Shown here piece after piece: positions 15,901 through 47,473 of a stretch of DNA of 64,000 nucleotides. Within the stretch, counting starts at the first letter, position 1; each line of letters starts with the position of its first letter. The notes under the pieces were generated by a model. It was given only the letters and a program-made list of their open reading frames with translations. It had not been told where the DNA came from and searched no databases. Both the position numbers and the translations under genes were made by a program. This stretch comes from Phaeosaccion multiseriatum (taxonomy: Eukaryota > Protista > Ochrophyta, other classes): positions 2,666,001-2,730,000 of the forward strand of contig OZ218960.1 of NCBI GenBank assembly GCA_965112735.1, written 5' to 3'.

Positions 15901-18900
15901 GTCACCTCCCTTTGGAAGTTCAGGAGCAGCGGCTGGGGCGAGCGAGGAGGAGGAAGGAAGAAGAGGGGAGGGGAGGGAGGGAGGGAGGGAGGGAAGGGGA
16001 GGGGGGGGGGGGGAAGGGGAGGGAGGGAGGGAGGGAGAAGGAGGTGTCAAGGGATACAAGAGGGAGGAGGTGTGCAAGCAGAGACTGACAAGACGGGCAC
16101 CATGGACAAGACGGGCACAAAGGAGCGCTCCTACAAGACACTCCGACAAGACGAGAAGGGCGAGGAAGGAAGCTAGACCACGCACACCCACCCACACTTA
16201 CCCAGCCATCCACACTCACCCACCCACCCACCCACCCACGCACCCACACTCACGCACCCACACTCACCCACCCACCCAACCTCCCACCCACCCACCACCC
16301 CACGCACCCGCCCACACCCCCGCCACCCATATACCTGCAGATTCCTGGCCCCAATTTGCAATAAGTGCTTGACTCTCTTGGCCCTCCTCCTGTTCATGGT
16401 GTGACTGATGAGGTTATGTGAGGGATCCAGAGGGTGCATCACGTTCATTGCCCGCAGCACAAAGCAGCGAGGTGGTTTTTCGTTGGCTGCTCCTCCTCCT
16501 CCTCCTCCTCCTCCTCCTCCTCCTCCTCCTCCTCCTGCTACTGCGGCTCCTCCTCCTGCGGTATCACCAGCTGCTGAGCCTTGGCCCTGTCCTACATGAG
16601 CCGCCATTCGACTTCGCTGAGAATTGGACATCTCTCCTCCTCCTCCTCCTGCTCCTCCTCCTCCTCCTCCTCCTCCTCCTCCTCCTCCTCCTCCTCCTGC
16701 TCCTCCTCCTCCTCCTCCTCCTCCTCCTCCTCCTCTTCCTCCTCCTCCTGCTGCTGCTGCTCGATCCCGAGCTCGCCTTGAGTCTGACAACTCTCCACCT
16801 CCATTTGGCGCCGAGCCCTTGCGCGAGCGATTTGAGTTGGACAAGTCGCTTCTCTCCGCCCCTCCCCCTCCCCCTCCTGCCCCTGCCGCTTCCTGCTGTG
16901 TGCCTAGCATGCGCTGTCGAAAGCTCGCCAGCAAGGCTCGACTGAGGAGGTGGCCCTCGCTGCGAGGGGTGGAGCAAGGTGTGGTGGAACGAGGACAGAG
17001 AGGGGGAAGGGGAGGAGAGAGGGAGAGGGAGAGAGAGGAGAGAGAGAGGGGGAGAGAGAAGATAGAAGAGAGTCAGAGATAACACAACTGAAACACATGC
17101 TTGCTTTTTTCCTTATATCGACCGTCCCATCCCATCCCACCGCCATCCACTGCCATTTACCGCAAAACCCTGCCATCCACTGCCATCCACTGCCATCCCA
17201 CCCCCATTCCACTAACGTACGTGTCGGGCATTTCCATCGCCGCCCTATCCGCCGCTCCGTCTCTGCCGAGCCCAGCCTCTGAAGACGCGTCCACCTTCCC
17301 GTCCACGCACAGACACTGCTTGGAAAAGTCAAAGGTGCTGTACACGTGAAAGAACATTGCCAAGAGTTGTAACGGCTGCTTGAGCACAGCGTGGTGAATG
17401 TTGGCGACAGAGAGAACCATGGCAACGAGGGTTGCTTCGGAGATGCACGCGAGGGTGTTGGTGCCGGTGTAACCGCGGCTTTCGTACAGCCACCATGCCT
17501 TTGTTTAGGGTTGGGGTTGGGAAAGGGAAAGAGGGAAGGGGGGGGGTTAAGAAAAAAGGGAGGGGAGGGAGGGAGGGAGGGAGGGGAAGGGAAAGAATGA
17601 GAGGGAGGGAGAGAGAGAGGGAGGGAGGGAGGGAAGGAGGGAGGGAGGGAGAGGGAGGGGAGGAAGGGGAGGGAGGGAGGCGGGAGGGAGGCGGGAGGGA
17701 GGGAGCAGAGAGGGAAGGAAGGAGGGAGGGAGGGAGGGGAGGAAGGGAGTGAGGGGAAGGGACGGAAGGGGAGGGAAGTCAGTGAAGGTGCGTGTGAAGC
17801 GATCAGTGACTCTATGCGCGCACATCTGAGTGTGTGTGTGCGTGTCATGATGTGTGCGCGCGCGTGCGTGTGTGTGTGTGCGCGTGGGTGCGGGGCCCAA
17901 AGCTTTGAGGTGGGGTGAGCAGCCCTCTCGCATAAGAAGCCTGCCCCTCCTCCTCCTCCTCCTCCTCCTCCTCCAATCTCCAATCCCTTCTCTCTCCTTT
18001 TGTTTCCTCTTCTCTCTCACCTTGATGAGTAGCAGTCCCCTCTTGAAGAGATGCCCTTTCCCGAGCAACACGTCAACCTCCTCCACAAAAGCCACCATGA
18101 GCAACTCCCCCAGTTGGTTCGCCGGCAGATCCACAGATACACGGTTATCAATCACGCACTTGATCCGTTGGGTAATGCCATTGTTGACAAAATTTACATT
18201 GGAAAGCCGGTGTCTGAAAGCTGACATCTCGCCAGCCCTTCCTCCTCCTCCTCCTGCGCCGCTGCCGCTGCTTCCCCGGCTCGTTCTGCTGCAGTTACTG
18301 TTGTTGCTGTTGCTATTCACAAAAGAGATTTCTGCCTTCACTGCAGCGACTGGTCCGCCCGTTGCTCCTGCTGCGGCTCTTCCTCCCCCTCCTGCTCCCC
18401 CTGCTCCTCCTCCTGCTCCTCCTCCTCCTCCTCCTCCTCCTCCTCCTCCTCCTCCTCCTCCCCCTGCTCCCTCCTCTGCACCATCCCCTGCAATCCCTTC
18501 GCTGGAAACCTTGCACAGCATCTCCGAGAGCCGAAGGAACCACGTCTGCTCCCGCCCGTGGCACAGGAAGGCACTCATTGTCACCTCTGCACACGCACAG
18601 CAGTTGGTGATACGGCACAGCACAGCACAGCACGGCACATACACACACACACACGGAGAGAGAGAGAGAGCGAGAGAGAGCACAGCAGGAGCGATGGCAG
18701 TGGATGGCAGAATACACAACGCAAGGAATGAGACGAACATAACATGAACGACATTGCAGGCAGACTGGCATACGGGCAGGCCTGCCGGCCCCACCTCACT
18801 GATCAAGCGCCCCTCCTCTCCCCTCCGCCTCCTCCTCCTCCTCCTTTCCCCCCCCCCCCCTCCCACCCCTCCTCCTTCTCCTCCTCCCTCTCCTCCTCCA

Positions 18901-19194
18901 ACGCTCCGTGTCCTTACCTTCGTCGGGCAGATACACTCTCAAAGCGTATCCCCCAATGGGATAACACTGCGCGCCCAGGGCCCTCTTGGCTTGATGCGCC
19001 ACAAACATAAACACACTGCTTCTGTACATATCCGCCGCTGGAGAGGGCGACAAAAGCCGAAGCAGGTCTTGCACCCGTCGGTCGATGGGCAGAGGCTCAC
19101 TGTTGGTGGGGATGAGGGAGGCGGGGAGGAAGACTTGGTTGGAGCCTTCTCCACTGAAGCTCGGCATCCGACTCAGCCAAGGTATGCCCATGCC

Positions 19195-19242
<48 letters not shown>

Positions 19243-22200
19243 GAAAGCTGTCATCATCCCTAAACCTCCACCGCCACCACCACCTCCTCTGCTACTATAC
19301 CCACTGCTACTGCCCCATCCCCCCCCCCCACCACCCATCCAGAAGGGCACAGGTGGGGGCGACACCCCTGTTGCTACAGTAGTGGTGTTGGTGGCAATAG
19401 TGCTGAGGCTTTGACCGGAGCCGAAGCCAGAAGCATTGAAACCAAAGCCCATTCCCAGGCCGAGGTGCCGAATGTGGGGTGACGGAGGCGACGCCAGCCC
19501 TACCATGGTGTTGCTGTAATTCCTCGCCAGACCGAAGGCCGCAGGTGACTTTGACAGTCCGTCACCTGCCCCACTCACACCACTCACGCCGAGCCGCCCA
19601 GCCCCACCCCCACTTCCACTCCCACTGGCGCTGTTCGTGCTGGTATTCCCTGTTCCACCCCAACCCATACCCAAACGCGAGAAGAAGCCGCCACCCCCAC
19701 CCCCTGATCCGCCTTGCTGCTGTGAAGAGAATTCAGTACTTCCACTGCCGTCTTCACCGTGACCCTCCCCCTGTCCCTGTCCTTGCCGCTGCGCATTCGA
19801 GTAGGCCTGATGTGAGTAACCGCCTATACCACCAACCCCAGCACCACCACCAGCACTCGAAAGGTTACTGAAGGAACCGTACCCCGTAGCACCAACACTG
19901 ATACCACCCACGCCACCCTCCTGACCGTCTGTCGGGGTCATGCCTGCTTGGCGGAGGAGAGCGCCCAGGGAATCCCCTCCACCCCCATCCATTGCCATCC
20001 CCATCCCTCCTCCTCCTCCTCCGCTGGCGCCGCGGCCGTGCTGGTGCATAAAGAGGCTCTGTTGATAGTTCAGCACGGCGTCAAGGCGATCGTCTTCGGC
20101 TTCGTTCTGATCCGCGTCGTCGTCTTCCTGTAACCCCGTCCCTCCTCCTCCTCCTCCTCCTCCTCCTCCTCCTGCAGCTGCTGCTGCCGCTGCTATACCT
20201 CCTCCTTCTGTTGTTGCTATGCCTCCTCCTCTTCCTCTTCCTCCTCCCCCCCCCTCTCCAATTCCACTAAGACGGCCGTGGATATCAATGTCACCACCAG
20301 CACCAGCACCAATGCCACCACTTCCGCCACTGACATACACGCCGTCATCGGCTCCCGGCAAGGGTTTGGCCAGTTGGGTGAAGCTCTCTACCCGATGTAC
20401 CACATTATCCAGATCGCTCATGTCAATGACCTGCCCAAACGAGTTCTGTCTCGGCCCCAGCTCTAGCATGGGGCCAAAGGAGTGCGAGCGTTGAAGCAGA
20501 CCCGGCGGCATATTCCCGAAGGACCCCACCATGAAACCATCGCCCAGTCCTGCTGCTCCTCCTGTTGTTGTATCACCACCTGCTGCCGCCGCCGCCGCTG
20601 CTGCTGCTGCTCCTGCTGTCAGCTGACCGCCGTGACCACTGTCTCTCCCCTCTGGCAGGGGCGGCATGCCTTCTCTCGACAGCGAAGATCTTCTCCTCTC
20701 CTCCCCCTCCCCGCCCCTCAGGCCGTCTCCCAAACCTATGCCCCCCCCTACCCCTCTCTTCCCCCCTCCTCCTCCTCCTTCTGCAGCCTCCAGCTCCTGC
20801 ATCTTCCGAACAAGCTTCTCCACCAGTTGGCTCTGCACCTGAATCTGTTGATGTGCCATGATCATCTGGTGCGAGAGCTCCTGATTCTGCTCGTCTCTTC
20901 TCTGCAGCTCCTCCAGCACCTGCCCTACTTGCCCTTGAAGTCCGAGCATCGACGTAGCCTTGTCCAAGAAGAAGATGAAGTCATCACAGGTCCACACGTC
21001 ATCCAGGGTCGCAAGCCCACCCAAGTACTCTGCTAACGAAGCTTCTCTCGCCTGTAGGAAGGAAGGCTCCGTGCTGGACCCCAGAAGTCGCTTGCCCGGC
21101 AAGGAGGGCAGGGTCAGGCGAGGGAACTTTCGCTGGAGGATGCGGTGGAGTCGCCAGAACTCTCCATAGCGGCGTTTCACCAACCACTGATGCATGCCAG
21201 CTGTGACCACCACTCGATACATGGCGTGCTTGGCACCCTTTTCGTCTTTCTCCAGCTCGCTGCCCTCGATGGTGACGCCAAAGTATAAGGGCCGAGGGAT
21301 ACGATCGCTTTGCCCCTCCTGCCCCCCCCCCCCCCCCCCCTCCCCCTGCTGCTGGTGCGGCTGCTGCGGCCCCTCCTCTTCTTTCTTATTATTTTGCGCC
21401 GTTGTCGTCGTCCCCACTCCTCCTCCCGCTGCCCCCCCGCCTGCTGCGGCCTGGTGCTGCGGCTGCTGCGGTGGCTGTTCTGCCTCACCCCTCTGCTGTG
21501 CCTGCCCCTCGACCAGCAAGCCGTCATCCAAGAGAGGCGTAGATATGTCCAACTGTGGCAGCTGTTGCACCTGTTGCTGCAGCGGTTGCAAGGGTGGGAG
21601 AGCGGCTCTGGCTCCTACATCGCCTCCAAGCCTGCCCCCTTCTTGTGTCTGCCCGCCTTCGTCATCCCCTGCGACCACGTCCAGATGCTGGCCGTACCCA
21701 TAGTCAGCAGCAGCAGCCGCAGCACCAGCAGCAACAGCAGCATCACCACCCACAGCAGTGTCCTCCACACCACCCTGCCTCTCCTCACCCCTGCTGCTGA
21801 TCGGCACTGCTCCACCATTGGTTGGGGTCGCAAAGGGATCTGCGGGGAAGGTAACCGTCACAGGTACATCATTACTGGTGCTGCTGCTGCCGCCGCCGCC
21901 GCCGCTGGGATGGAAAGGCGGGCCTCCGAGCGCCAGAGGGGGCGCGGGGGGGCCTGGGCCTGGAACTAAGTGAGAAGGAAGAGCTGCTTCCGCCGGCGCT
22001 GCTAGTGGGACAGCAGGTACTGGTCCACCAGTGACACCAAAGCCAATCTTGTAGCCCTCATCCAAGGCCTGAGTGTCTTTCTCCTCGCTGCCGGGGCAAA
22101 TTGCGAAAATATTGACGAGCGGAGACAGGGAGGGCGGGTGCGGAAAAGGGAGGGAGGGGGAAGAAGGATGAACGGAGGTAAGAGGGGTGTGGTATGGAGA

Positions 22201-22428
22201 GAGCCGCGGGAACCACACACAAAGCACACAAATGACGGGAAAGGGTCAGAGAGGACGAGGATAGACACAGACCCAGGCCGGAAGAATATTGTTGCACTTC
22301 CCCCCGCCCTACGTCCCCCCCTCCCCACAACACTACACACTTCCCCCCCGATAGCGATTACCCCCGCCCTACCCCCCGCTCCTCTCTAAACGTCCCTCTT
22401 CGCATATCACCCACCACACCCACCTCAT
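12635..22428 (-). CDS. Multi-exon protein: PX domain + PAP/OAS1-like nucleotidyltransferase fold (degenerate active site) + LOTUS/OST-HTH-like domain + Gly/Gln-rich tail
   Basis: PX: [49 protein letters not shown]. NTase-like: [16 protein letters not shown]|[18 protein letters not shown]|[32 protein letters not shown]|GWRPD. C-terminal: [11 protein letters not shown]...[15 protein letters not shown]. Probable 5-nt first coding exon ATGAG at 22424-22428. Last exon is polyG/polyQ with stop at 12635. Confidence 0.8.
12705..12900 (-). repeat. Coding (CAA)n run, polyglutamine
   Basis: (GTT)n on the + strand within the last exon of the PX gene. Confidence 0.9.
14980..15142. repeat. TCGA-rich intronic tandem repeat (about 60-bp unit)
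   Basis: AGGTAGGTCGATA..ATATCGAGGTCGAGGTAGGTC.ATATCAAGGTCGACATCGATTTCG repeated about 2.5 times. Confidence 0.8.
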
Positions 22429-29829: not shown

Positions 29830-30833
29830 CAGGTGTGGCCTCACTCACAGCTTGCGTCGATGAGGAAGGGAGGGGGGGGAGTTGGTGCTACCCGTCGATG
29901 ACACCCCCCCCGAGCCGAGGCGGCACCACCGCTGCTCTATTTTTTTTTGTACAGAACCAGCACTCAGGTTAGCAGAGCGATGCATCCGCATCTGCTTTCG
30001 ATCCCTCTCCTCCCACGGCCTCTCAGCGCTCCCACGACTATTCGCCGTATCGGAGCACGCGCGCTTGTGGTCGTCGCCATTTGCTACTGCTCTACCACTC
30101 ACTTGGTGGGCGACTCCCTGTCATGGCTTGTAACGTGTCTGGACATGCTTCTCTTCGTCCACAGCACGTGTCTGGGAGGACGACAAGAGTGGCAGGCACG
30201 TCATATGTTTTGGACGGTGTGAAGGGACCTAAATTCAGTGCTGCGTCCAGGTCACAGGTTACGGCAGCCAAACAACCAACGGTTCCCCAGATGCCAACTG
30301 CGCAGAGCAGCAGCAAGTGGCGACGAGGGCAAGGGCTGCCCCGATCAGGTCGAGGGTTTTTTGGGGGGGGGGGGAGCGTACGTACGTACGTACGTACGTA
30401 CCCGTGTCTACTCTCCTTGGGGGGAGGAGGGGAGGAAGGAGAGGGTAACAAGGTAGCGGCCTTGCGCAGGGCCGTTGGTGATACATGCACAGCAGCGCTA
30501 TAGGGGGGGGGCACAAGGGGGCGGACGGGCGCGGCAGACGGCTGAGACTGAGACTTGAGGAGAGATTCGAAGGTTTCCGTTCCAGTTTATGGACCAAAAA
30601 TATGATGTCGATGCAAATCGAAGGGGCCGTTTGTAGCCCGCTGTTCGCACGCTTCGTTCAAACGCTTGGCCTCCTTCGGTCTTTGGGTCACAGAGAAAAA
30701 GTAACACAACAACAGAGGAGGAAAAAATGTGAAAAAAATCTAAGGGGGGTACTAAACTGAAACTGAAACTGAAACAGTTGAGATTGATACCGGGGCGCGA
30801 AAGGAGCTGCGAGGGCAGGGAGCAGACGTGCAG

Positions 30834-32025
30834 ATGGCCTCCTCTCTCTCGCATCGCCATTTCCACCAGCAGGAGCAGCAGCAGCAGCAGGGGGAGGAGA
30901 AGGCTATTCCCTACTGGCGGCTGGTGAAGGAGTGCCATAATCACCTCAACAGCGCCAGGCGAGCGAAGCAGAACCACCAGCAGCATCAGCAGCGGCCGCC
31001 AGAATCTGATGGAGGATCAGCATGCGAAGCAGCAGCAGATGTAGAAGCATTTCAAGGAGATGTGGGAGCGGGAGCAAGACCTGTGGTAGGCTTGGCAGGC
31101 AGGGTGGTGACCGGCAGCAGCAGCGGCACCTTGTCGAGCCTCAGGCACTCAACCACCATGTGGAGTGAGCCCTTGGCCCTTGGATGCCGAGTAGACGTCC
31201 TTGACAGTGGCGGGCGAGCGTATCGAGTGAATTTGGGCGTCCTTCGCTACCTGGGGGAAGTGAGATTTGCCCCAGGAGAGTGGGCTGGCCTGGAGATGGA
31301 TCAGATGCATGGGCGGAACGACGGCGCCGTTCAGGGCACCCGCTACTTTACGTGCAAGCCTCGCTTCGGCTGCTTCGTCAGGAGTCACCGCTGCAGGCGC
31401 ACGATCCAATGCTTCGACCGTCATTTGGGGCCTCCTCATCCTCCTCCTTCTCGTCACCGTCGTCCCACCACTGCCACATCTTTTGGTGCTTCTCCTCCTG
31501 CTCCTGCTCCTCCTGCTCCTCCTCCTTCTCTTGCATCTCCTCCTCATCATCCTCACCACCCTCATCGTCATCCCCATAATCATCATCATCACCATCCCCC
31601 CCCCCCTCCTCCACCTCATCCTCCCCCTCCCCCTCCTCCTCCTCGCACCCCTGATGCTGGAGTGGTGGCCCTTGAGAGGAGCGATGCCGCGGCTCCTGCC
31701 ATCTCTCCAGCGGCGGTGGTGCGGGCAGCAATGGTGGATGCAAACTCTGCATACCACCGCCACAGCAGCAGTATCACAGCTGACAGTAGCAGAGTCACGT
31801 ATGGCAGAGGACCCCCAATACAGGGGGTAGTAGAGGTAGGCGAAGAGCCGTTGCTAGAAGGAGATGAGACGCACCTAGTGGGAGACTCTGGAACAAAAGG
31901 GGTGGGAGGGAAGGTTGCGCGGCCTGGGGGCTCGGCTTTTACCTCTGGTGCTGAGGAGGAGGAGGAGGAGGAGGAGGAGGAGGAGGAAGAAGAAGAGGCG
32001 AACGTGGAGAAGCAGGAGGAGGAGG

Positions 32026-32083
<58 letters not shown>

Positions 32084-35000
32084 CACGGAGAAGGATGAGA
32101 AGGAGGAGGATAAGGGGCCGCAAGGCGGTGTGAGTGCCACTGTTTCTAGAACGCCGGGCACAGCTGCGCTGCACAAAGAAGAGGACGTATGTGGCCGGGA
32201 GAATGGTGCATCACTTGGCAGTACACACCTCAGCGCAATAATTGGTGATACAGCAGGCGCAGCGGCAGCAGAGGGAAGGGGGTCGTCAGCCTTGCCGGAG
32301 CGGCGCATGTCACCAACCGCTGTATCACCAACTGCTGTATCACGTCCTCCTGCTGTGCAGCCTCGTCGAAGCCTGTCGTACGATGCCGTGGCACGCCGGG
32401 CTCGAGCAGCAGCAGTAGAGCTACAAATGGCGGCAGCTGTGGAGTCACAGATGGCCCCGCAAGTGGACCGTGTGCAAGTACGACGACATGGAAACCATCA
32501 GGACCGCGGCCTGGTTCAGCAAGAGGAGGAGGAGGAGAGGGAGGGGGGGAAGGAGGAGAGTCCGCTGTTGGGTGCAGAAAAAAAAGCAGCAGAAGCACCT
32601 GAAGCAGCAGTAGCAGCAGGAGCAGGAAGAGTGTGCCATACCAAGAGGCGGCACACCCCTCCTCCCCTCACAAATGGCAGCGGTAGGGGCAGTGGGCGAG
32701 GAGGCGGAGAAGGGCGAGGAGGAGGACGAGGGCGAGGAGGAGGAGAAGGAGGAGGAGGGGGTATCTCCTCCTGTCCACCCTCTCCTCCTCCCCATCACAT
32801 CTGCCTGGCGCTATCCTCATTGTCCGCTGTGGACGGTTCGGAGTTTCCGCTTTGTGTATCGTCGTCTCATTCGTCGCCGGGGAGGGCGCCTCACTCTCCC
32901 GTGTACATTGAGGCTTCTGTAACTGCGGCCACGGCAGCAACCTTCGCGGCAGCGGTAGCAGCAGCAGCAGGAGCAGTGGACGACACAGCAGCACAGGCAG
33001 TGGGTGATTCAGCAGCAGCAGTAGTTGGTGATATAGCGCCTATATCGAGGCAGCAAAGGCAACAAGGAAGTCGAGACTCCTCCTCCACCACTCCCCGGTC
33101 CAGGTATGACAAGCCCTGGCACTCGTCTCTGCGCAGCGCTGTATCACCAACTGCTGGTGCTGGTGCTGGTGTTGGTGCTGGGGCGGCCGTGAGCCCTGGC
33201 AGCAGGACTAGCAGTAGCAGGAGCAGCAGCAGCTGGGGCAAGAGTTGGAGCTGCGATAGGAGCGGCAGTTCCAGTTTGACGTCCGCCCCGTCGTCGCCAG
33301 GGCTGTCGGTGGTTTCCGCATCGGGGTGGTCCGGTTCGGCATGTGTGGTGCCTTCTTCGTCCAAAACAGGCCCTCCTCCTCCTCCTCTTGGTGCTTCGCT
33401 GTCTCCTTCGTCTTCTTGTTCTTGTTCTTGTTCTTGCTCTTCGAAAGCAGCGGCATCACCAACTGCTGTATCACCAACTGCTGCAGTGCCAGCGATGCGC
33501 AGCATCCCCACCATCGCAAGGGAAGAGCGGGGATACAAGCAGTTTCAGCAGCAGCAGCGACAGCGCCAGAAGGAGCAGCCGCAGTTAATGATACAGCAGC
33601 AGGAGTTGATGATACAGCAGCAGCGGTTGGTGGCACAGAAGGAAGGTGCAGGGCAGAAGAAACAGCAGCAGCAGCGGCAGCAGCAGGCACCACTGTCTAA
33701 GAAAAGGCAGAGAGTGCGAGAGGGAGAACGAGAGAGAGACCCAAGAGGCGGGCAGGGTTGTTACAAGAGCCAGCCGGGGAGGAGTGGTGCATGGAGCCGG
33801 AGTACTAAAAGCCACTCTCCTCGCCCTGCTGCCCGACCACAGTGGAATGGCGAATTGTTCATCCCGCCTACTGTATCACCAACTCCTGTAGCTGGGGTGG
33901 TTGTGACGTCCGCTCCTCCTTCGTGCCGGGAAGGCCGCAAGCGACCGGACCAAACAGCCGAGGCAGAGAAGAAGGCTCGGCAGCAGGGGGTGCCAGGTAT
34001 ACCTCGGAGAGAAGCATCATCACCGTCGCCTTCTGCTGCTGCTGTATCACCAACTCCTGTAGCTGGAAGAGGAAGAAGCAGAAGCAGAAGCCTGTCGAGG
34101 CAGAGCAATTCGAAGCCTTCCGCAGCAGCGTTGAGAGAGAAGTGGGGCAAGCCGTGGGGGGGCAAGCCCTCCCTCTCCTCCACCCACCTCGTGAATGCTG
34201 CTGTATCACCAACGGCTGGTGAAGGTGATGGCGACGGTGGTGGTGGTGGTGGTGAAGGCCGACCAGAGAAGCACTGTTCCAGCCCCATGGAGGAGGAGGA
34301 GGAGGAGGAGGAGGAGTGGGAGGGGGAGGGGGAGGAGGAGGAGGAGGAGAAGAAGCAGGAGGAGCAGGAGGAGGAGGAGGAGAAGGAGGAGGAGGAAAAT
34401 AGTATGGTGGAGGAAGATGAGGAGGAAGTGAAAGAGGAGGAAGGCACCGACGATGACTGGGACGCAGACTCCCTTGAAGTCTTCATATGTCGACCACCTA
34501 CGGCTTCGCCAATGAGAGAACAATGTCGAGCTTCCGACTGCCAGCAGCATCAGGAGGAGGAGGAGGAGGAGCAGCAGTTGGCGAAAAAGAAGCAAGAGGA
34601 GGGGGAGGAGGAAGAGAATGTGGTGAAGGAGGAGGAGGACGAGGAGCAGCAGCAGCAGCAGCAGCAGTTGGTGATACAGCAGCAACGAGAGCAGCAGCAG
34701 CAGCAGGAAGAAGAGGATCAGGAGGAAGGGGATTTGCCTTCGCCACGAGGGGGAGCCGTTTCGATGGGGAGGGGTAAGGAGCATGACGAGGGAGAGGAGG
34801 CGTGCGAAGGAGCCAATGGTAGCCTCGCCGTGCCCACCTCCAGACCCGCTACTATTCTGTGTGCTACAGCAGTTGGTGATACAGCAGCAGTTGCCGATAC
34901 AGCAGCAGTTCATGATACAACAGCAACAGCAGCAGCAGCAACAGCAGCACTTGATGATAGAGCACCAGTTGGTGACATCGCAGCAGCTGATGACAAAGCA

Positions 35001-35393
35001 GCAGTTGGTGATACAGCAGCAGCAGGGGAAGCACTTCGTGATACACCAGAATCCAAAACGAGTGGTACCAATACCAATGACGCGAGCGACCCCTCACGAC
35101 TGCCCTGGTTGGGGGTGATTTCTGGCGGGGGATTGCCCGTTGTGGGAGGGGGAGGAGGAGGGGAAGGAGGGGGAGAGGGAGGAGGAGGAGGAGAGGGAGG
35201 AGGAGGGCGGGGAGGTGGACGAGGAGAACGACAGGAAGGAGGAGCACAGAGAGGGGAAGAACAAGAAGGCATTCTATCCAGCCCCCTGTCGATCCGACTC
35301 TACCCGTGCAGCGGGGAGGCCTCCTCTCCTCCACCGGTTGATGCTTTGTGCCCCCCGATTGACCCTGAGCAGCAGCAGGAGTTGGTGATACAG

Positions 35394-35425
<32 letters not shown>

Positions 35426-36155
35426 TGAACTGTCGTCTACTTCCCTACTCCTGTGGTCTCCGCGCCCCTCACGCTCGCCTTGCCGCCTCACTGTCAGCGG
35501 GAGGGGGAGGCGGAGAAGTAGGATGGGCCCTACTGAGGCCAAGAGGAGGCACAGCTCCACCAGCCCGGGTAGTGTGGGCATCAACAGCAACGCCGTCTTG
35601 TGGAGCAGGAGGAGGTTCACAGATGGTTTCTGTACAACCAACGCCGCCGCCGCCGCTCATCAATACGCACAGCAGGCGGGAGAGGGAGACGGAGAGGGGG
35701 ACGGAGGTACCAACGGAGGCAACGAAGGCATCAACGGGCGCTACATTAGTGCGCTGCGGAGTCCCAGCGGGCAGCGGCTAATGGACAAGATGGACCGTCT
35801 GGCGCAGTCCATGCAAGAGGTCCAGGGAAGGGTGGAGCGGTGCCGTCAGCACAGCCTCAGTAGACGCACCAGCAGAGTGGGGAGTAGCGTCGGGAGTAGA
35901 AGGGGGAGTGCGATTGGGAGCCCGACCCCGAGTGAGGCGGGCAGCAGTTTCGGAGGCAGCAGCAGCAGTTGTCTTGTGAACGAGATTGGGTGGGGATGCC
36001 TTCTGAATGCTCCCGCCCCTCGTCCCCGGGAAGGAGGAGGAGGAGGAGGAGGAGAGTGGAGAGGCTATGTGGCGGCTGTCCACCCTTTGCCTTTGCGTTC
36101 GTCCATCAGGGTAGCAGCAGCAGTTGATGATACAGCAGCAGCAGGAGTTGGTGAC

Positions 36156-36195
<40 letters not shown>

Positions 36196-36833
36196 GAGGA
36201 GGAGGAAGAGGAGGACAACAAGAAGAAGAGGAGGGCATGTATATGCCAAGGCCAGCAGTGGAGTCACAGATGCCAGCAGTGGATTCACAGATCTCCACCC
36301 ATAGAGGAGGGCAGCCGCGTCAGAGGCAGGAGCAGCAGCAGGAGGATTTGGTGATACAGCAGCAGCTGCTTTCTAGAGTTGGAGCTCGACCTCAGAGCCG
36401 TACGAGGAGGCCTCTCCATGGGGGCCATGAAACTGCCACCGGTGAGCCCAGCCCGACGACAACCTTGCGCAGGGTAGCCAAGTCGCTGGTGGTGCTCGCG
36501 CCTCGATGTGAGGGTGTTGGTGCTTCGATTGGGTCGGCGGCTGTCACAAAAACCATCGTTGGTGTTGGTGCTTCTGACCCTGCTTCTACTTCTACTTCTG
36601 CCTCTGCTTCTGCAGTGTCGATGACCGGAGGAGTAAAATTGGGAGGCACGCGTGACGCACCACCAGCCGTGACAGACACAGACACAATTCCACTCAGAAG
36701 GAGAAGGCGGAGGAGGAGCAATAGTAGTAGCAGCAGCGGCTCGGACCTGCACTCTCGTCCGTCGTCTATATCATCTGTGTCTGATGGCACGGCACTCTCC
36801 CATGGGGCATCAGCAAGCTCACTCACTGCGTGA
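30834..36833 (+). CDS. About 2000-aa CAP-Gly domain protein, otherwise low-complexity/disordered
   Basis: Uninterrupted 6-kb ORF. CAP-Gly motif GVLRYLGEVRFAPGEWAGLEMDQMHGRNDGAVQGTRYFTCKPRFGCFVR (GKNDG-like). First ATG at 30834. Confidence 0.8.
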
Positions 36834-43974: not shown

Positions 43975-44422
43975 GGGCTTGGACGAGGAGCAGCATCTTG
44001 AGTAGGGGGAGGGGCGGGGATGGAGAGACGCAAGGCTGCACGGCTTGAGTGTATCGCTCGTTTCGGTGGTCCACAATGACTGCCCACGTTGCCTACTCGG
44101 CCCACTCCATCCACCTTGCCCACCTTGCCTACTCTGGCTACTCTGCCCACCTTGCCCACCCGGCCCACCTTGCCCACAGCAAAAAGCGAGTCACGCCAGG
44201 CTCAAACAGAAAGGAAGGAGACCAAGAGAATGGGTGGGTGCGGCGGTGTGCGTCCTACTGGACAGAGAGAGAGAGAGCATGCGCAGCCATTGGAGGGAGC
44301 AAGTGCCAGTCTAGTAGAGCGGCGCGCCCTGAAGACGGGAAGAGAGAGAGAGAGCCCTACGGCGAGTCTGCCGGTGCATGATGCGATTGCCTTTCATTCA
44401 GTCATCACCAGTGTGTTTTCCT

Positions 44423-46306
44423 CTAGTTTACTTCAAACATCACACAGCCCTCGTTGCTGTCCTGCCCCGTGGCGTGGAGTCCGAGCTCTTCGTTGAGGTA
44501 CGCCAACACCGCAGGCTTGAGCACGCTAATGCCATCCACGCTGCCGCGGCCTCGACCGGTGATGACGGTGATCCAGCCCTTCGCCTTCTCCACTTGGAGA
44601 GCGTAGCGAAGGGCGGCCTTGCCTGTCCACTCCGAATGCCCGTGCAAGTCCAGAATCTTCCCTTCCTTGGCCGCCTTCCAATGCGACAATACACCCTTTT
44701 TGACAGCCTCTGCGTACAAGCCATCAGCCGAGCTCCATTGCCCGTGCACGGACAGGATGTCGACAGCGGTGCTGTAGGTCACCTCATTGGGCTGAATGCC
44801 TTCCCTCTGCATCTCCTCCAGCAAGGCAAGCGCCTTCTCGTGCTCTCCTCCATTGCCACAAGCCGCAATCGCAGAGCTGTATGAGATTTCATCGGGTCGA
44901 AGCCCTTCCCTCCGCATCTCCTCCAGCAAGGCAAGCGCCTTCTCGTGCTCTCCTGCATTGCCACAAGCCGTAATCGCAGCGTTGTATGAGATTTCATCGG
45001 GTCGAAGCCCTTCCCTCCGCATCTCCTCCAGCAGGTCAAGCGCCTTCTCGTTCTCTCCTGCCTTGCCACAAGCAGCAATCGCAGAGCTGTATGAGATTTC
45101 ATTGGGTCGAAGCCCTTCCCTCCGCATCTCCTCCAGCAAGGCAAGCGCCTTCTCGTGCTCTCCTGCATTGCCACAGGCAGTGATTGCAGAGCTGTATGAG
45201 ATTTCATTGGGTCGAAGCCCTTCCCTCCGCATCTCCTCCAGCAAGGCAAGCGCCTTCTCGTGCTCTCCTGCCTTGCCACAAGCAGAAATCGCAGAGCTGT
45301 ATGAGATTTCATTGGGTCGAAGCCCTTCCCTCCGCATCTCCTCCAGCAGGTCAAGCGCCTTCTCGTGCTCTTCTCCTGCATTGCCACAGGCAGCAATCGC
45401 AGAGCTGTACGAGATTTCATTGGGTCGAAGCCCTTCCCTCCGCATCTCCTCCAGCAAGGCAAGCGCCTTCTCGTGCTCTCCTGCATTGCCACAGGCAGCA
45501 ATCGCAGAGCTGTATGAGATGACATCAGGTCGAAGCCCTTCCCTCCGCATCTCCTCCAGCAAGGCAAGCGCCTTCTCGTGCTCTGCTGCCTTGCCACAGG
45601 CAGCAATCGCAGAGCTGTATGAGATTTCATTGGGTCGAAGCCCTTCCCTCCGCATCTCCTCCAGCAAGGCAAGCGCCTTCTCGTGCTCTCCTGCATTGCC
45701 ACAGGCAGTGATTGCAGAGCTGTATGAGATTTCATTGGGTCGAAGCCCTTCCCTCCGCATCTCCTTCAGCAAGGCAAGCGCCTTCTCGTGCTCTCCTGCC
45801 TTGCCACAGGCAGCAATCGCAGAGTTGTATGAGATGACATCAGGTCGAAGCCCTTCCCTCCGCATCTCCTCCAGCAAGGCAAGTGCCTTCTCGTGCTCTG
45901 CTGCCTTGCCACAAGCAGCAATCGCAGAGCTGTACGAGATTTCATTGGGTCGAAGCCCTTCCCTCCGCATCTCCTCGAGTAGGGCAAGCGCACCCTTCCA
46001 TCGCCCAGCCTTACCCACTGCAGAAATGGCGGCACTATACACAATGACATTCATCCGAAGCCCCGCTGCTTTCGCCTCCTCTATCACTCTCGCCACCCCT
46101 CTCCAGTCCCGCATATTTCCAAGTCTCTGGATCTCCTTCATCAACGCTATTTGCTTCTGCCGCTCATTGCCTCTAGCACCTCGTCCCTGCCGCGATCCTC
46201 CCGTGATACTCCTCTTAGTTCCAAGAATGCGAAGCGAGTGTGTCGCCGATCGCCGCTGAGCATGCACTGCTGCTGGGGCTGTGAGGACGGAGTTCTGTTT
46301 CCCCAC
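44423..46306 (-). CDS. PPR-SMR protein: about 13-14 P-type pentatricopeptide repeats + C-terminal Smr domain
   Basis: 35-aa repeats EISYSSAIAACGxAGEHEKALALLEEMRREGLRPN/D. Smr motifs ILDLHG and VITGRGRGS...VLKPAV. No intron in this interval. True start probably upstream (about 46385-46394; see indel finding). Confidence 0.93.
   Translation of the reverse strand: MGKQNSVLTAPAAVHAQRRSATHSLRILGTKRSITGGSRQGRGARGNERQKQIALMKEIQRLGNMRDWRGVARVIEEAKAAGLRMNVIVYSAAISAVGKAGRWKGALALLEEMRREGLRPNEISYSSAIAACGKAAEHEKALALLEEMRREGLRPDVISYNSAIAACGKAGEHEKALALLKEMRREGLRPNEISYSSAITACGNAGEHEKALALLEEMRREGLRPNEISYSSAIAACGKAAEHEKALALLEEMRREGLRPDVISYSSAIAACGNAGEHEKALALLEEMRREGLRPNEISYSSAIAACGNAGEEHEKALDLLEEMRREGLRPNEISYSSAISACGKAGEHEKALALLEEMRREGLRPNEISYSSAITACGNAGEHEKALALLEEMRREGLRPNEISYSSAIAACGKAGENEKALDLLEEMRREGLRPDEISYNAAITACGNAGEHEKALALLEEMRREGLRPDEISYSSAIAACGNGGEHEKALALLEEMQREGIQPNEVTYSTAVDILSVHGQWSSADGLYAEAVKKGVLSHWKAAKEGKILDLHGHSEWTGKAALRYALQVEKAKGWITVITGRGRGSVDGISVLKPAVLAYLNEELGLHATGQDSNEGCVMFEVN
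44786..46048 (-). repeat. Coding tandem array of 12 x 105-bp near-identical PPR units (one unit +3 bp)
   Basis: Span is 1263 bp = 12x105+3. The units share near-identical nucleotide sequence, including synonymous sites. Confidence 0.92.
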
Positions 46307-47473
46307 AGCAGGGCGGTGCGCAGCAGATGGAGCAGCAGAAGCCCATCTTTCCCACGAGCTTATAAAAGCAGTAGCAGGAGCACCATATCGGCCATCAGCG
46401 GAAGTACCTCCTGGGGCACAGCGGAAATAAAGGCCGCCACCCTGTTGCCCGTCATCCCCTTCGCTCGCTCAATTCACGATAGAACTCCTTCCTTTCTCAG
46501 GATACCACCTGAAGCCCACGACGAATATGCTGTGGCTGTCGACTCTGGCACGGGATCGAGGGGGGGAGAACACACTGGAGCGAATTTCGAAATCTCCCCG
46601 TGAAAAGTGTGCGGCTTACAAGGGATTCGCATCGCAAAACTAAACTAACAAAGGGGTGGCGGGGGACACAGCAGCGCTGGAGCAGCTCGACGCCATCTTC
46701 TGTAGAGGCTCTCTTCGTGGACGAAGGATGACGTGTGGATCATGGCGCTTCGGCTCAGCGGGAGGAGCCAGGTGTCAGGATACAAAGGACGCAGCCATGT
46801 GTCAGGATCCAGGCATGGCTTCCACGGGCCACAAGTAGAGCGCTTGAGAGGCATGCGTACATACATATGCACATACCTACACACACACACCCTCAGTCTT
46901 CCCCGGGGGGCATGTCCCCAACCCTGACGAGGCCCTGCAAGGCGGCCTCCACTTGTTGGCCCTGCCACTGGCTCGAGTGAAGATATGGCAGGGGGGGAGG
47001 AGCTGCACTTTGAAGGAGGCGTTGATTTGAGGAGGTGGTCGGAAAGACAACATCCTTTGTATGTAGCAGGCAGGAGCGTTGGTTACCTCATGCACGCACG
47101 CATACCTCGCCCAAAAGTGAGGGTGTGTGTGAGTGCGTGTCCATGTCTGGGTCCAGTCGTTCCAGGCGGATCACACACACACACACACAACACACACACA
47201 CACACACAACACACACACAAACACACACGTACAAATACACGCACACAGACTCCGTGGAAGACTACGGTGAGGGAAGCAGGGTCCTTCTGGGCCGCTAACA
47301 CACTGATAGGAGCGAAACAGGTCCGCCTTACCACTCCCGACAGGGCTTGGAGAGCCGAAATGGTAGTCCGTCATTTAGTGAATTTCAATAACACTAACCG
47401 TCACGTTGCAGTTTAGCCCAGCATGGCTCGGCCGATATACAAAGAGCTCCGCCAGGGTGGGGGTTATTCTCAA

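Follow-up and report, generated by a model that had tools for sequence, protein, structure and literature searches.

Can a single natural gene encode a TALEN-like RNA endonuclease, with near-identical repeats that differ at the residues reading RNA and a nuclease domain attached to them? The question is raised by a 64,000-nucleotide stretch of the ochrophyte Phaeosaccion multiseriatum (contig OZ218960.1 of GenBank assembly GCA_965112735.1, positions 2,666,001 to 2,730,000 of the forward strand), which we call the window. The segment 44423-46306 on the minus strand is a single open reading frame (ORF) of 627 codons that predicts a PPR-SMR protein, in which pentatricopeptide repeats (PPR) precede an Smr domain, and the original prediction asked whether this protein is such a nuclease. 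There is a precedent in SOT1, which has been shown to act as an RNA endonuclease with sequence specificity and has been re-engineered to new targets (PMC6662315). Here we report that the gene encodes a PPR-SMR, probably of the SACEK-type clade, whose repeat array is recombining and unusually homogeneous; it is an extreme example of a described algal family and not a new system.

The PPR array and its register

Tandem Repeats Finder placed an array with a 105-bp period at 44784-45991 and gave it 11.5 copies, 92% matches and a score of 2018, far beyond chance. The Pfam PPR models matched the protein at E 1e-82 to 1e-116 with 9-12 stretches each, all far over the cut-off (PPR_2, 381 bits, E 1e-116, 12 stretches; PPR, 313 bits; PPR_3, 299 bits). 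The protein consists of about 14 PPR hairpins followed by the C-terminal Smr domain, and its best sequence matches in the PDB, aligned end to end, are the synthetic consensus proteins cPPR-Telo1 and dPPR (E 1e-98 to 1e-74) and the natural-sequence PPR10, the top matches to designer PPRs and PPR10 having E 1e-98 to 1e-89. A single-sequence AlphaFold2 model shows regular helix pairs, and for most of residues 50-480 its predicted local distance difference test score (pLDDT) exceeds 90. Both parts of the protein lie in one polypeptide and one uninterrupted ORF, with the PPRs running up to residue 542 and the Smr domain starting at residue 548. The ORF, the profiles and the fold thus bear out the original view that a PPR tract is fused to an Smr domain carrying LDLHG and VITGRG.

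The units were read in the register V/E-I-S-Y-(5)...P-(35). This register was fixed by alignment to two designer proteins with known code positions, cPPR-Telo1 and dPPR-U8A2; the engineered code positions there coincide with the residues that follow the aromatic and the proline. Units 1-12 carry the 5/35 pairs SN, SD, NN, SN, SD, SN, SN, SN, SN, SD, ND and SN, exactly as first read, with Ser or Asn at position 5 and Asn or Asp at position 35 in 12 of 12 units. Each code toggle is a single transition: at position 5 the codon switches between AGC (Ser) and AAC (Asn), at position 35 between AAT (Asn) and GAT (Asp). Under the plant PPR code, the pairs do yield the target that had been proposed, 5'-AG(C/U)AGAAAAGUA-3'. 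This 12-mer is absent from the window even when one mismatch is allowed (0.16 occurrences expected), a result with no bearing on organelles.

The array had been described as 12 nearly identical units. This holds for eleven of them, units 2-12, which are 88-100% identical in nucleotides, and fails for unit 1 (about 68%, range 62-70%), which is an older copy. Units 4 and 9 are identical in DNA, the identity is 97% between units 2 and 5 and likewise between units 3 and 6, and unit 7 has one additional GAG codon within 45359-45376. We also found the patchwork of shared blocks just as it had been noted, with KAAE...PD and then V in units 2 and 5, TACGN in units 4, 9 and 11, and ALDL in units 7 and 10.

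The Smr domain

To characterize the C-terminal domain, we aligned the last PPR and the C-terminus with 13 relatives, and checked the invariance of the motifs in 14-16 relatives, including an Smr-only alignment. The Smr model matches 8 of the 14 aligned relatives at E <= 0.01. The family profile matches pTAC2/PAP2 over the last PPR and Smr (E 5e-14 to 1e-11) and the Smr structures of N4BP2/B3BP (E 5e-10 to 6e-9). AlphaFold2 with the alignment produced a model (pLDDT 87.7, predicted template modelling score 0.80) in which a two-helix PPR precedes strands and helices arranged as in Smr domains. Foldseek against the PDB placed PAP2 at the top (query-normalized template modelling score 0.72-0.74), followed by the Smr domains of N4BP2, MutS2 (also on disomes) and YdaL. 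A word search restricted to residues 505-627 gave no match; an Smr profile search without the word index did match. Because the family profile finds pTAC2 and N4BP2, and because the best matches of the confident model are Smr folds, the identity of the domain is secured.

The motifs LDXH and TGXG are the defining marks of Smr subfamily 2 (PMC3858433). The profile matches and the model support that the domain is a genuine subfamily-2 Smr in which both LDLH and TGRG are intact. In SOT1, TGXG is required for RNA cleavage and LDXH for DNA cleavage, and human B3BP, which carries LDLH and TGRG, is nuclease-active (PMC6662315); the two motifs here are identical to those of B3BP. The domain is also minimal, having the shortest helix 1-strand 2 loop in the alignment and no C-terminal helix.

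Variation among units

Among units 2-12, 26 nucleotide columns are variable, 11 of them synonymous, and 14 of the 35 residue columns vary, two of which are the code positions. Over all codons, the synonymous difference per site (pS) is 0.136 and the nonsynonymous difference per site (pN) is 0.054, a ratio of 0.40. For the two code codons pS is 0.000 and pN 0.157, and for the other 33 codons pS is 0.140 and pN 0.047. The code codons thus have about three times the pN of the scaffold and change at about the synonymous rate, and 15 of the 595 possible position pairs have a summed residue diversity at least as high as that of positions 5 and 35. As judged from these ratios, the scaffold is shown to be under purifying selection. 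The claim that the array varies at its RNA-code residues was therefore right as far as code pN goes (0.157 vs 0.047) and too narrow in that 12 other residue columns vary, positions 9 and 13 the most; the units are not identical save for their specificity residues, as those of a TALE-like array would be. The excess at the code positions is an enrichment; it is no TALE-like restriction and no evidence for positive selection. In our reading, code residues are kept different and the scaffold is kept uniform, as any PPR protein with a defined target needs.

The original prediction also suggested unit shuffling or conversion, and a four-gamete test agrees: all four combinations occur in 27 of 91 pairs of informative biallelic columns. 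Because these site pairs fail the test, the units are mosaics made by unit exchange (unequal crossing-over or gene conversion), with recurrent mutation less likely. Since pS is as high as 0.136, the units are no fresh copies, and their sequences point to a balance of mutation and exchange.

Relatives of the SACEK type

The best match in the protein collection is 49% identical. Named matches come from the dinoflagellates Polarella, Symbiodinium and Noctiluca, the stramenopiles Nannochloropsis, Ectocarpus, Amphora, Aureoumbra and Octactis, and the haptophyte Prymnesium. The units of these relatives read ...ISACEKGGQW..AL.LL..., with SACEK at positions 9-13. In the summary given by a review (PMC12787238), this motif is credited to Safonov and Berdieva (Protistology 2025); SACEK-type repeats are there described as abundant in core dinoflagellates and present in heterokonts, cryptophytes and haptophytes, as sometimes standing many in a row, and as occurring in PPR-SMRs and also inside polyketide synthases. 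The units here read AACGK, TACGN or SACGK with His at position 17, and only unit 1 keeps Trp there. The best-scoring relatives have canonical SACEK units, and by sequence similarity the gene probably belongs with the SACEK-type PPRs known from dinoflagellates, stramenopiles and haptophytes.

How unusual is the homogeneity of the array? The self-identity at a lag of 35 over 210 residues is 0.80 here, compared with 0.5-0.73 in about 20 of 120 matches. Among 14 arrays that we compared, the internal residue identity ranges from 59 to 88%, and the present array is second highest (0.84) after that of a protein termed P0188 (0.88). The premise that natural PPR repeats are highly divergent from each other is therefore sound for plants and does not extend to this algal clade, in which arrays of 59-88% residue identity are common. 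Ser or Asn at position 5 and Asn or Asp at position 35 dominate among the relatives. Averaged over the 14 arrays, relative diversity peaks at position 35 (2.09 times the array mean), and position 5 ranks seventh (1.65 times), outranked by exposed helix-b positions.

An Smr domain ends 15 of the 120 matches. Other matches join the same type of array to a DYW deaminase, an RluA-type pseudouridine synthase, a methyltransferase or an RRM (Pfam), and such fusions suggest that SACEK-type arrays serve these lineages as a general targeting module. SACEK-type arrays with RNA-modifying or RNA-binding modules are seen in P0001, P0032, P0022 and P0023: P0001 has an RRM and a DYW deaminase-like C-terminus, and the Polarella proteins carry an RluA-type pseudouridine synthase or a methyltransferase. 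In all, 4053 cluster representatives, P0188 among them, match the Smr profile (E <= 1e-3). Some relatives (P0121, P0122 and P0013) contain two or three stretches of Smr per protein, and P0013 has two tandem PPR-Smr modules.

A search seeded with P0188 returned mostly dinoflagellate proteins, together with PPR-SMRs that stem either from ENA assemblies or from named dinoflagellates. Of the PPR-SMR proteins, at least 17, which are 360-930 amino acids long, each have their own code string, mostly of S/N and N/D pairs. Compared in this way, the same scaffold with different arrays is a property of the clade and no peculiarity of this gene. Our scan of the JGI metagenomes for close relatives found a single locus at 26% identity, and no paralogues or alleles of this gene.

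Paralogous arrays in another organism

The protein P0188 and its paralogue P0087 are uninterrupted ORFs on long contigs of one ENA assembly. The P0188 array has 7.4 copies of a 105-bp unit with 88% matches (lag-35 self-identity 0.88), and the P0087 array has 8.4 copies of a 105-bp unit with 83% matches. The units of P0188 are 0.90 identical to each other, as compared with 0.80 to the units of P0087, and the flanks of the two genes are about 85% identical. The code strings differ, reading SD ND SG NN SG SG ND in P0188 and ND ND SN NT ND NT SD NN in P0087. Homogenisation or re-amplification has, on this sequence comparison, followed gene duplication, and the predicted specificity has changed.

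The code-codon excess of the Phaeosaccion array repeats in both proteins. In P0188 the code pN is 0.283 and the non-code pN 0.045, with the code pair ranking 5 of 595; in P0087 the values are 0.276 and 0.123, with rank 35 of 595. P0087 lies together with a third paralogue, P0277 (574 amino acids, 68% identical to P0188, Smr present), on one 206,727-bp contig of ENA assembly ERZ26859023, which suggests linked PPR-SMR paralogues in that dinoflagellate-like organism.

Reading frame and surroundings

The features of the gene are listed in Table 1.

Table 1. Features of the PPR-SMR gene, in positions of the window
Feature	Position	Strand	Remarks
Whole ORF, PPR-SMR	44423..46306	-	627 codons; stop at 44423-44425
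Codons 1-55, open without ATG	46142..46306	-	Basic, Ser/Thr/Arg-rich; disorder predicted
N-terminal capping hairpin, degenerate	46049..46153	-	Residues 52-86; two helices in the model
PPR unit 1 (SN)	45944..46048	-	62-70% nucleotide identity to units 2-12; Trp17 kept, clade-typical
PPR units 2-12	44786..45943	-	Eleven 105-bp units; 88-100% nucleotide identity
PPR unit 13, terminal, divergent	44681..44785	-	Residues 508-542; about 38% nucleotide identity to the others
Smr domain	44426..44665	-	Residues 548-627; protein ends directly after the last strand
LDLH motif	44642..44653	-	Residues 552-555; invariant D and H across the family alignment
TGRG motif	44549..44560	-	Residues 583-586; both G invariant and T nearly invariant in the family alignment

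The original prediction called the gene intron-free in an intron-rich genome. This is not established: because no in-frame ATG precedes codon 56, translation starts at M56 or in an unseen 5' exon. Codons 1-55 are possibly a presequence reached from such an exon, or a 5' untranslated region with the start at M56. AlphaFold2 predicts codons 1-41 to be disordered, and up to codon 47 the segment is basic with zero acidic residues; a basic, acid-free N-terminus would fit a presequence, which is only suggestive. Modelling of a 5' exon with GT-AG introns gave 525 stop-free combinations that could supply a start and was uninformative. An ATG at 46346 in another frame has a good context (AAAG ATG G) and opens a 43-codon ORF (46218-46346, minus strand) that overlaps the 5' part of the PPR frame; its product begins with Met-Gly and is then Cys-rich (MGFCCSICC...). 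This ORF could be an upstream ORF, or its ATG could be the true start, given a one-base assembly error.

Long uninterrupted ORFs are not unusual in the window, which also contains one of 2001 amino acids with a CAP-Gly domain (30828-36833, plus strand) and one of 1143 amino acids with a PX domain (18796-22227, minus strand). An absence of introns is for this reason weakened as a distinctive trait. Two ORFs that overlap the array, of 487 amino acids (44796-46259, plus strand) and 318 amino acids (44779-45735, minus strand), were rejected as genes, being stop-free by-products of the repeat with no family match. The PPR frame is taken as the gene frame because only there do family models match and synonymous changes occur in excess.

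A profile derived from the units, run over all six frames of the 64 kb, found no other PPR gene, and Rfam had no match within the window. Just 3' of the gene, at 44081-44177, lies a 9/27/36-bp tandem repeat of the CCACCTTGC type (69-84% matches); in spurious ORFs that overlap there, it reads as repeats of Pro/Thr/Leu or of Gly/Lys/Val. About 900 bp upstream of the gene is a (CA)n microsatellite with 39 copies (47172-47247).

Discussion

What does the protein do? We propose an explanation that, taken as a whole, we consider fairly likely. The gene encodes a P-class PPR-SMR, probably of the consensus-like SACEK-type clade, whose approximately 14 PPR hairpins form one continuous solenoid ahead of a complete subfamily-2 Smr domain. 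Unit duplication, with unequal crossing-over or gene conversion, has kept the eleven central units alike and has shuffled them. If the PPR code applies, the tract would bind single-stranded RNA in parallel, one base per unit, and by the plant code its preferred site would be purine-rich and near 5'-AG(C/U)AGAAAAGUA-3'. By analogy with SOT1, the Smr domain would cut RNA at or near the bound site, so that a PPR-SMR with parallel one-unit-one-base binding and nearby Smr cleavage is the most likely nature of the protein. The setting would most likely be an organelle and the task the processing of transcripts or rRNA; the organellar location is an assumption, since the ORF has neither a settled start codon nor a recognised targeting peptide. 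Over evolutionary time, turnover of the array would alter the unit number and the code string, and paralogues of the clade may in this way gain different targets.

Several observations weigh against this explanation. The single-sequence Pfam score of the Smr domain is 21.3-23.6 bits, under the gathering cut-off of 25.7. No in-frame ATG lies ahead of codon 56 (M56, ATG at 46139-46141) in a frame that is stop-free from 46468, and no targeting peptide is recognised in the N-terminus of the ORF. The units have His for the conserved Trp of the clade at position 17 and Gly for Glu at position 12. Positions 9 (A/T/S) and 13 (K/N) are individually more variable than the code positions, and the enrichment at the latter comes from two codons. 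The code readout is that of plant PPRs, extended here to an algal clade, and a target composed mostly of A and G may imply low specificity. The gene is known here from its DNA sequence alone.

Comparison with known systems shows what is shared and what is particular to this gene. Like the plant PPR-SMRs SOT1/PPR53, GUN1, pTAC2/PAP2 and SVR7/ATP4, it has a P-class tract and a C-terminal subfamily-2 Smr domain, and GUN1 likewise has both LDLH and TGXG; the likeness is one of profile and fold, with the last PPR and Smr of pTAC2 as the match. The plant proteins have divergent repeats, are few per genome and have conserved orthologues, whereas the present gene has eleven units of 88-100% DNA identity and a minimal Smr domain. 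Its SACEK-type relatives have units of the type ISACEKGGQW, often in long runs and some with Smr. Unit 1 here has the related ISAVGKAGRW, while units 2-12 read A/T/S-A-C-G-K/N with His in place of Trp at position 17. The summary of the SACEK type in PMC12787238 makes no mention of DNA-level tandem arrays, mosaicism or code-focused diversity.

Designer PPRs of the cPPR and dPPR kind (PDB 5orq, 5i9d, 6een) resemble the gene in that one scaffold is repeated and the code residues are meant to change, and dPPR-U8A2 uses SN for A and ND for U. They differ in being synthetic, in having T besides S and N at position 5, and in lacking a nuclease domain. With TALEs the array shares tandem near-identical units of 102-105 bp, one unit per base, two specificity residues and proneness to recombination, and an attached nuclease is the logic of a TALEN. 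The fold is a different one, however, and TALEs read DNA, not RNA; in addition, the units here vary at 12 other columns and are 88-100% instead of nearly 100% identical, and the nuclease fusion is natural. Of the idea of a natural TALEN-like RNA endonuclease, the PPR-Smr architecture stands, but the variation is not as clean as in TALEs and the reading itself is not new, having been published for PPR-SMR proteins through SOT1 (PMC6662315).

Could the array simply be unstable? In a paralogue that is young or under weak constraint, slippage or unequal crossing-over would then have left the array as a neutral by-product, its code string would be tuned to no target, and the protein would be a low-specificity binder of purine RNA or the product of a decaying gene. 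SN is the commonest pair, which makes the predicted target A-rich and of low complexity; there is also no clear start codon, and one unit has an in-frame extra codon. Yet the ORF is intact across 627 codons, the scaffold has a pN/pS of 0.34, the catalytic motifs of Smr are intact and the solenoid is confidently predicted by AlphaFold2. We regard neutral instability as unlikely.

Selection might instead favour the shuffling itself. The gene would then belong to an adaptive, fast-reprogramming nuclease family in which unit recombination is selected for new RNA specificities against viruses or selfish organellar elements, as in the Rf-like PPRs of plants. Fujii et al. 2011 reportedly described plant RFL PPRs as clustered, fast-evolving P-class paralogues with elevated non-synonymous change at specificity positions. 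RFL proteins differ from the present gene in that their repeats are not near-identical within a protein, they have no Smr domain, and they diversify between paralogues instead of between the units of one array. Mosaic units, code codons that change at about the synonymous rate over a constrained scaffold, and paralogues in another organism with a common scaffold, different code strings and homogenisation after duplication all fit such a family. However, a code diversity near pS fits relaxed or divergent constraint and is not positive selection, every PPR protein needs code residues that differ between its units, and no foreign RNA target is known. On balance we think an adaptive origin quite unlikely. 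Its widest form, in which PPR-SMR families of several algal lineages are natural programmable RNA endonucleases whose units recombine under selection to track viral or selfish organellar RNA, this gene being one freshly re-arrayed member, strikes us as a long shot.

The protein might also not be an RNA-targeting nuclease, but a protein scaffold or DNA binder whose Smr domain is a DNA nickase or a module associated with ribosomes or polymerase, as is pTAC2 in the plastid RNA polymerase. The closest structural match is indeed PAP2/pTAC2 of the plastid polymerase complex, LDXH is tied to DNA cleavage in SOT1 (PMC6662315), and SACEK-type repeats inside polyketide synthases, listed in the summary in PMC12787238, would fit a role apart from RNA. 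But pTAC2 lacks TGXG, having SVRG where this protein has TGRG, and the positions that stay variable hold S/N and N/D, the canonical residues of the RNA code, which makes a role of this kind very unlikely. Finally, we dismiss as highly improbable that assembly has collapsed or expanded the near-identical 105-bp units and so falsified their number or order: short reads struggle with 1.2 kb of units that are 88-100% identical, and Logan contigs of the sequencing runs hold 0.47-0.69 of the sampled words, but nearly each unit has its own combination of variants to anchor the assembly, the reading frame is maintained throughout, and like arrays occur in an independent long-contig assembly (P0188 and P0087).

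How much of this is new? The PPR-SMR literature already contains the idea of an RNA endonuclease that is natural and programmable, and runs of similar SACEK repeats have been published as well. The tandem array at the DNA level, its mosaicism and the replicated code-codon excess appear to be undescribed in the full-text literature that we searched.

In the life of the organism, the gene probably adds another factor to organellar RNA processing, and the value of the finding lies in the family and not in the single locus. A uniform consensus scaffold obtained through recombination, with two toggling residues per unit, is the design that the engineers of designer PPRs have also reached. The literature on PPR-SMR engineering seeks a 'high-activity Smr' (PMC6662315), and the compact Smr domain on such a scaffold, with both catalytic motifs present, would be a candidate. 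If the turnover of the array is real and general, it would be nature's way to retarget a one-repeat-one-base RNA binder.

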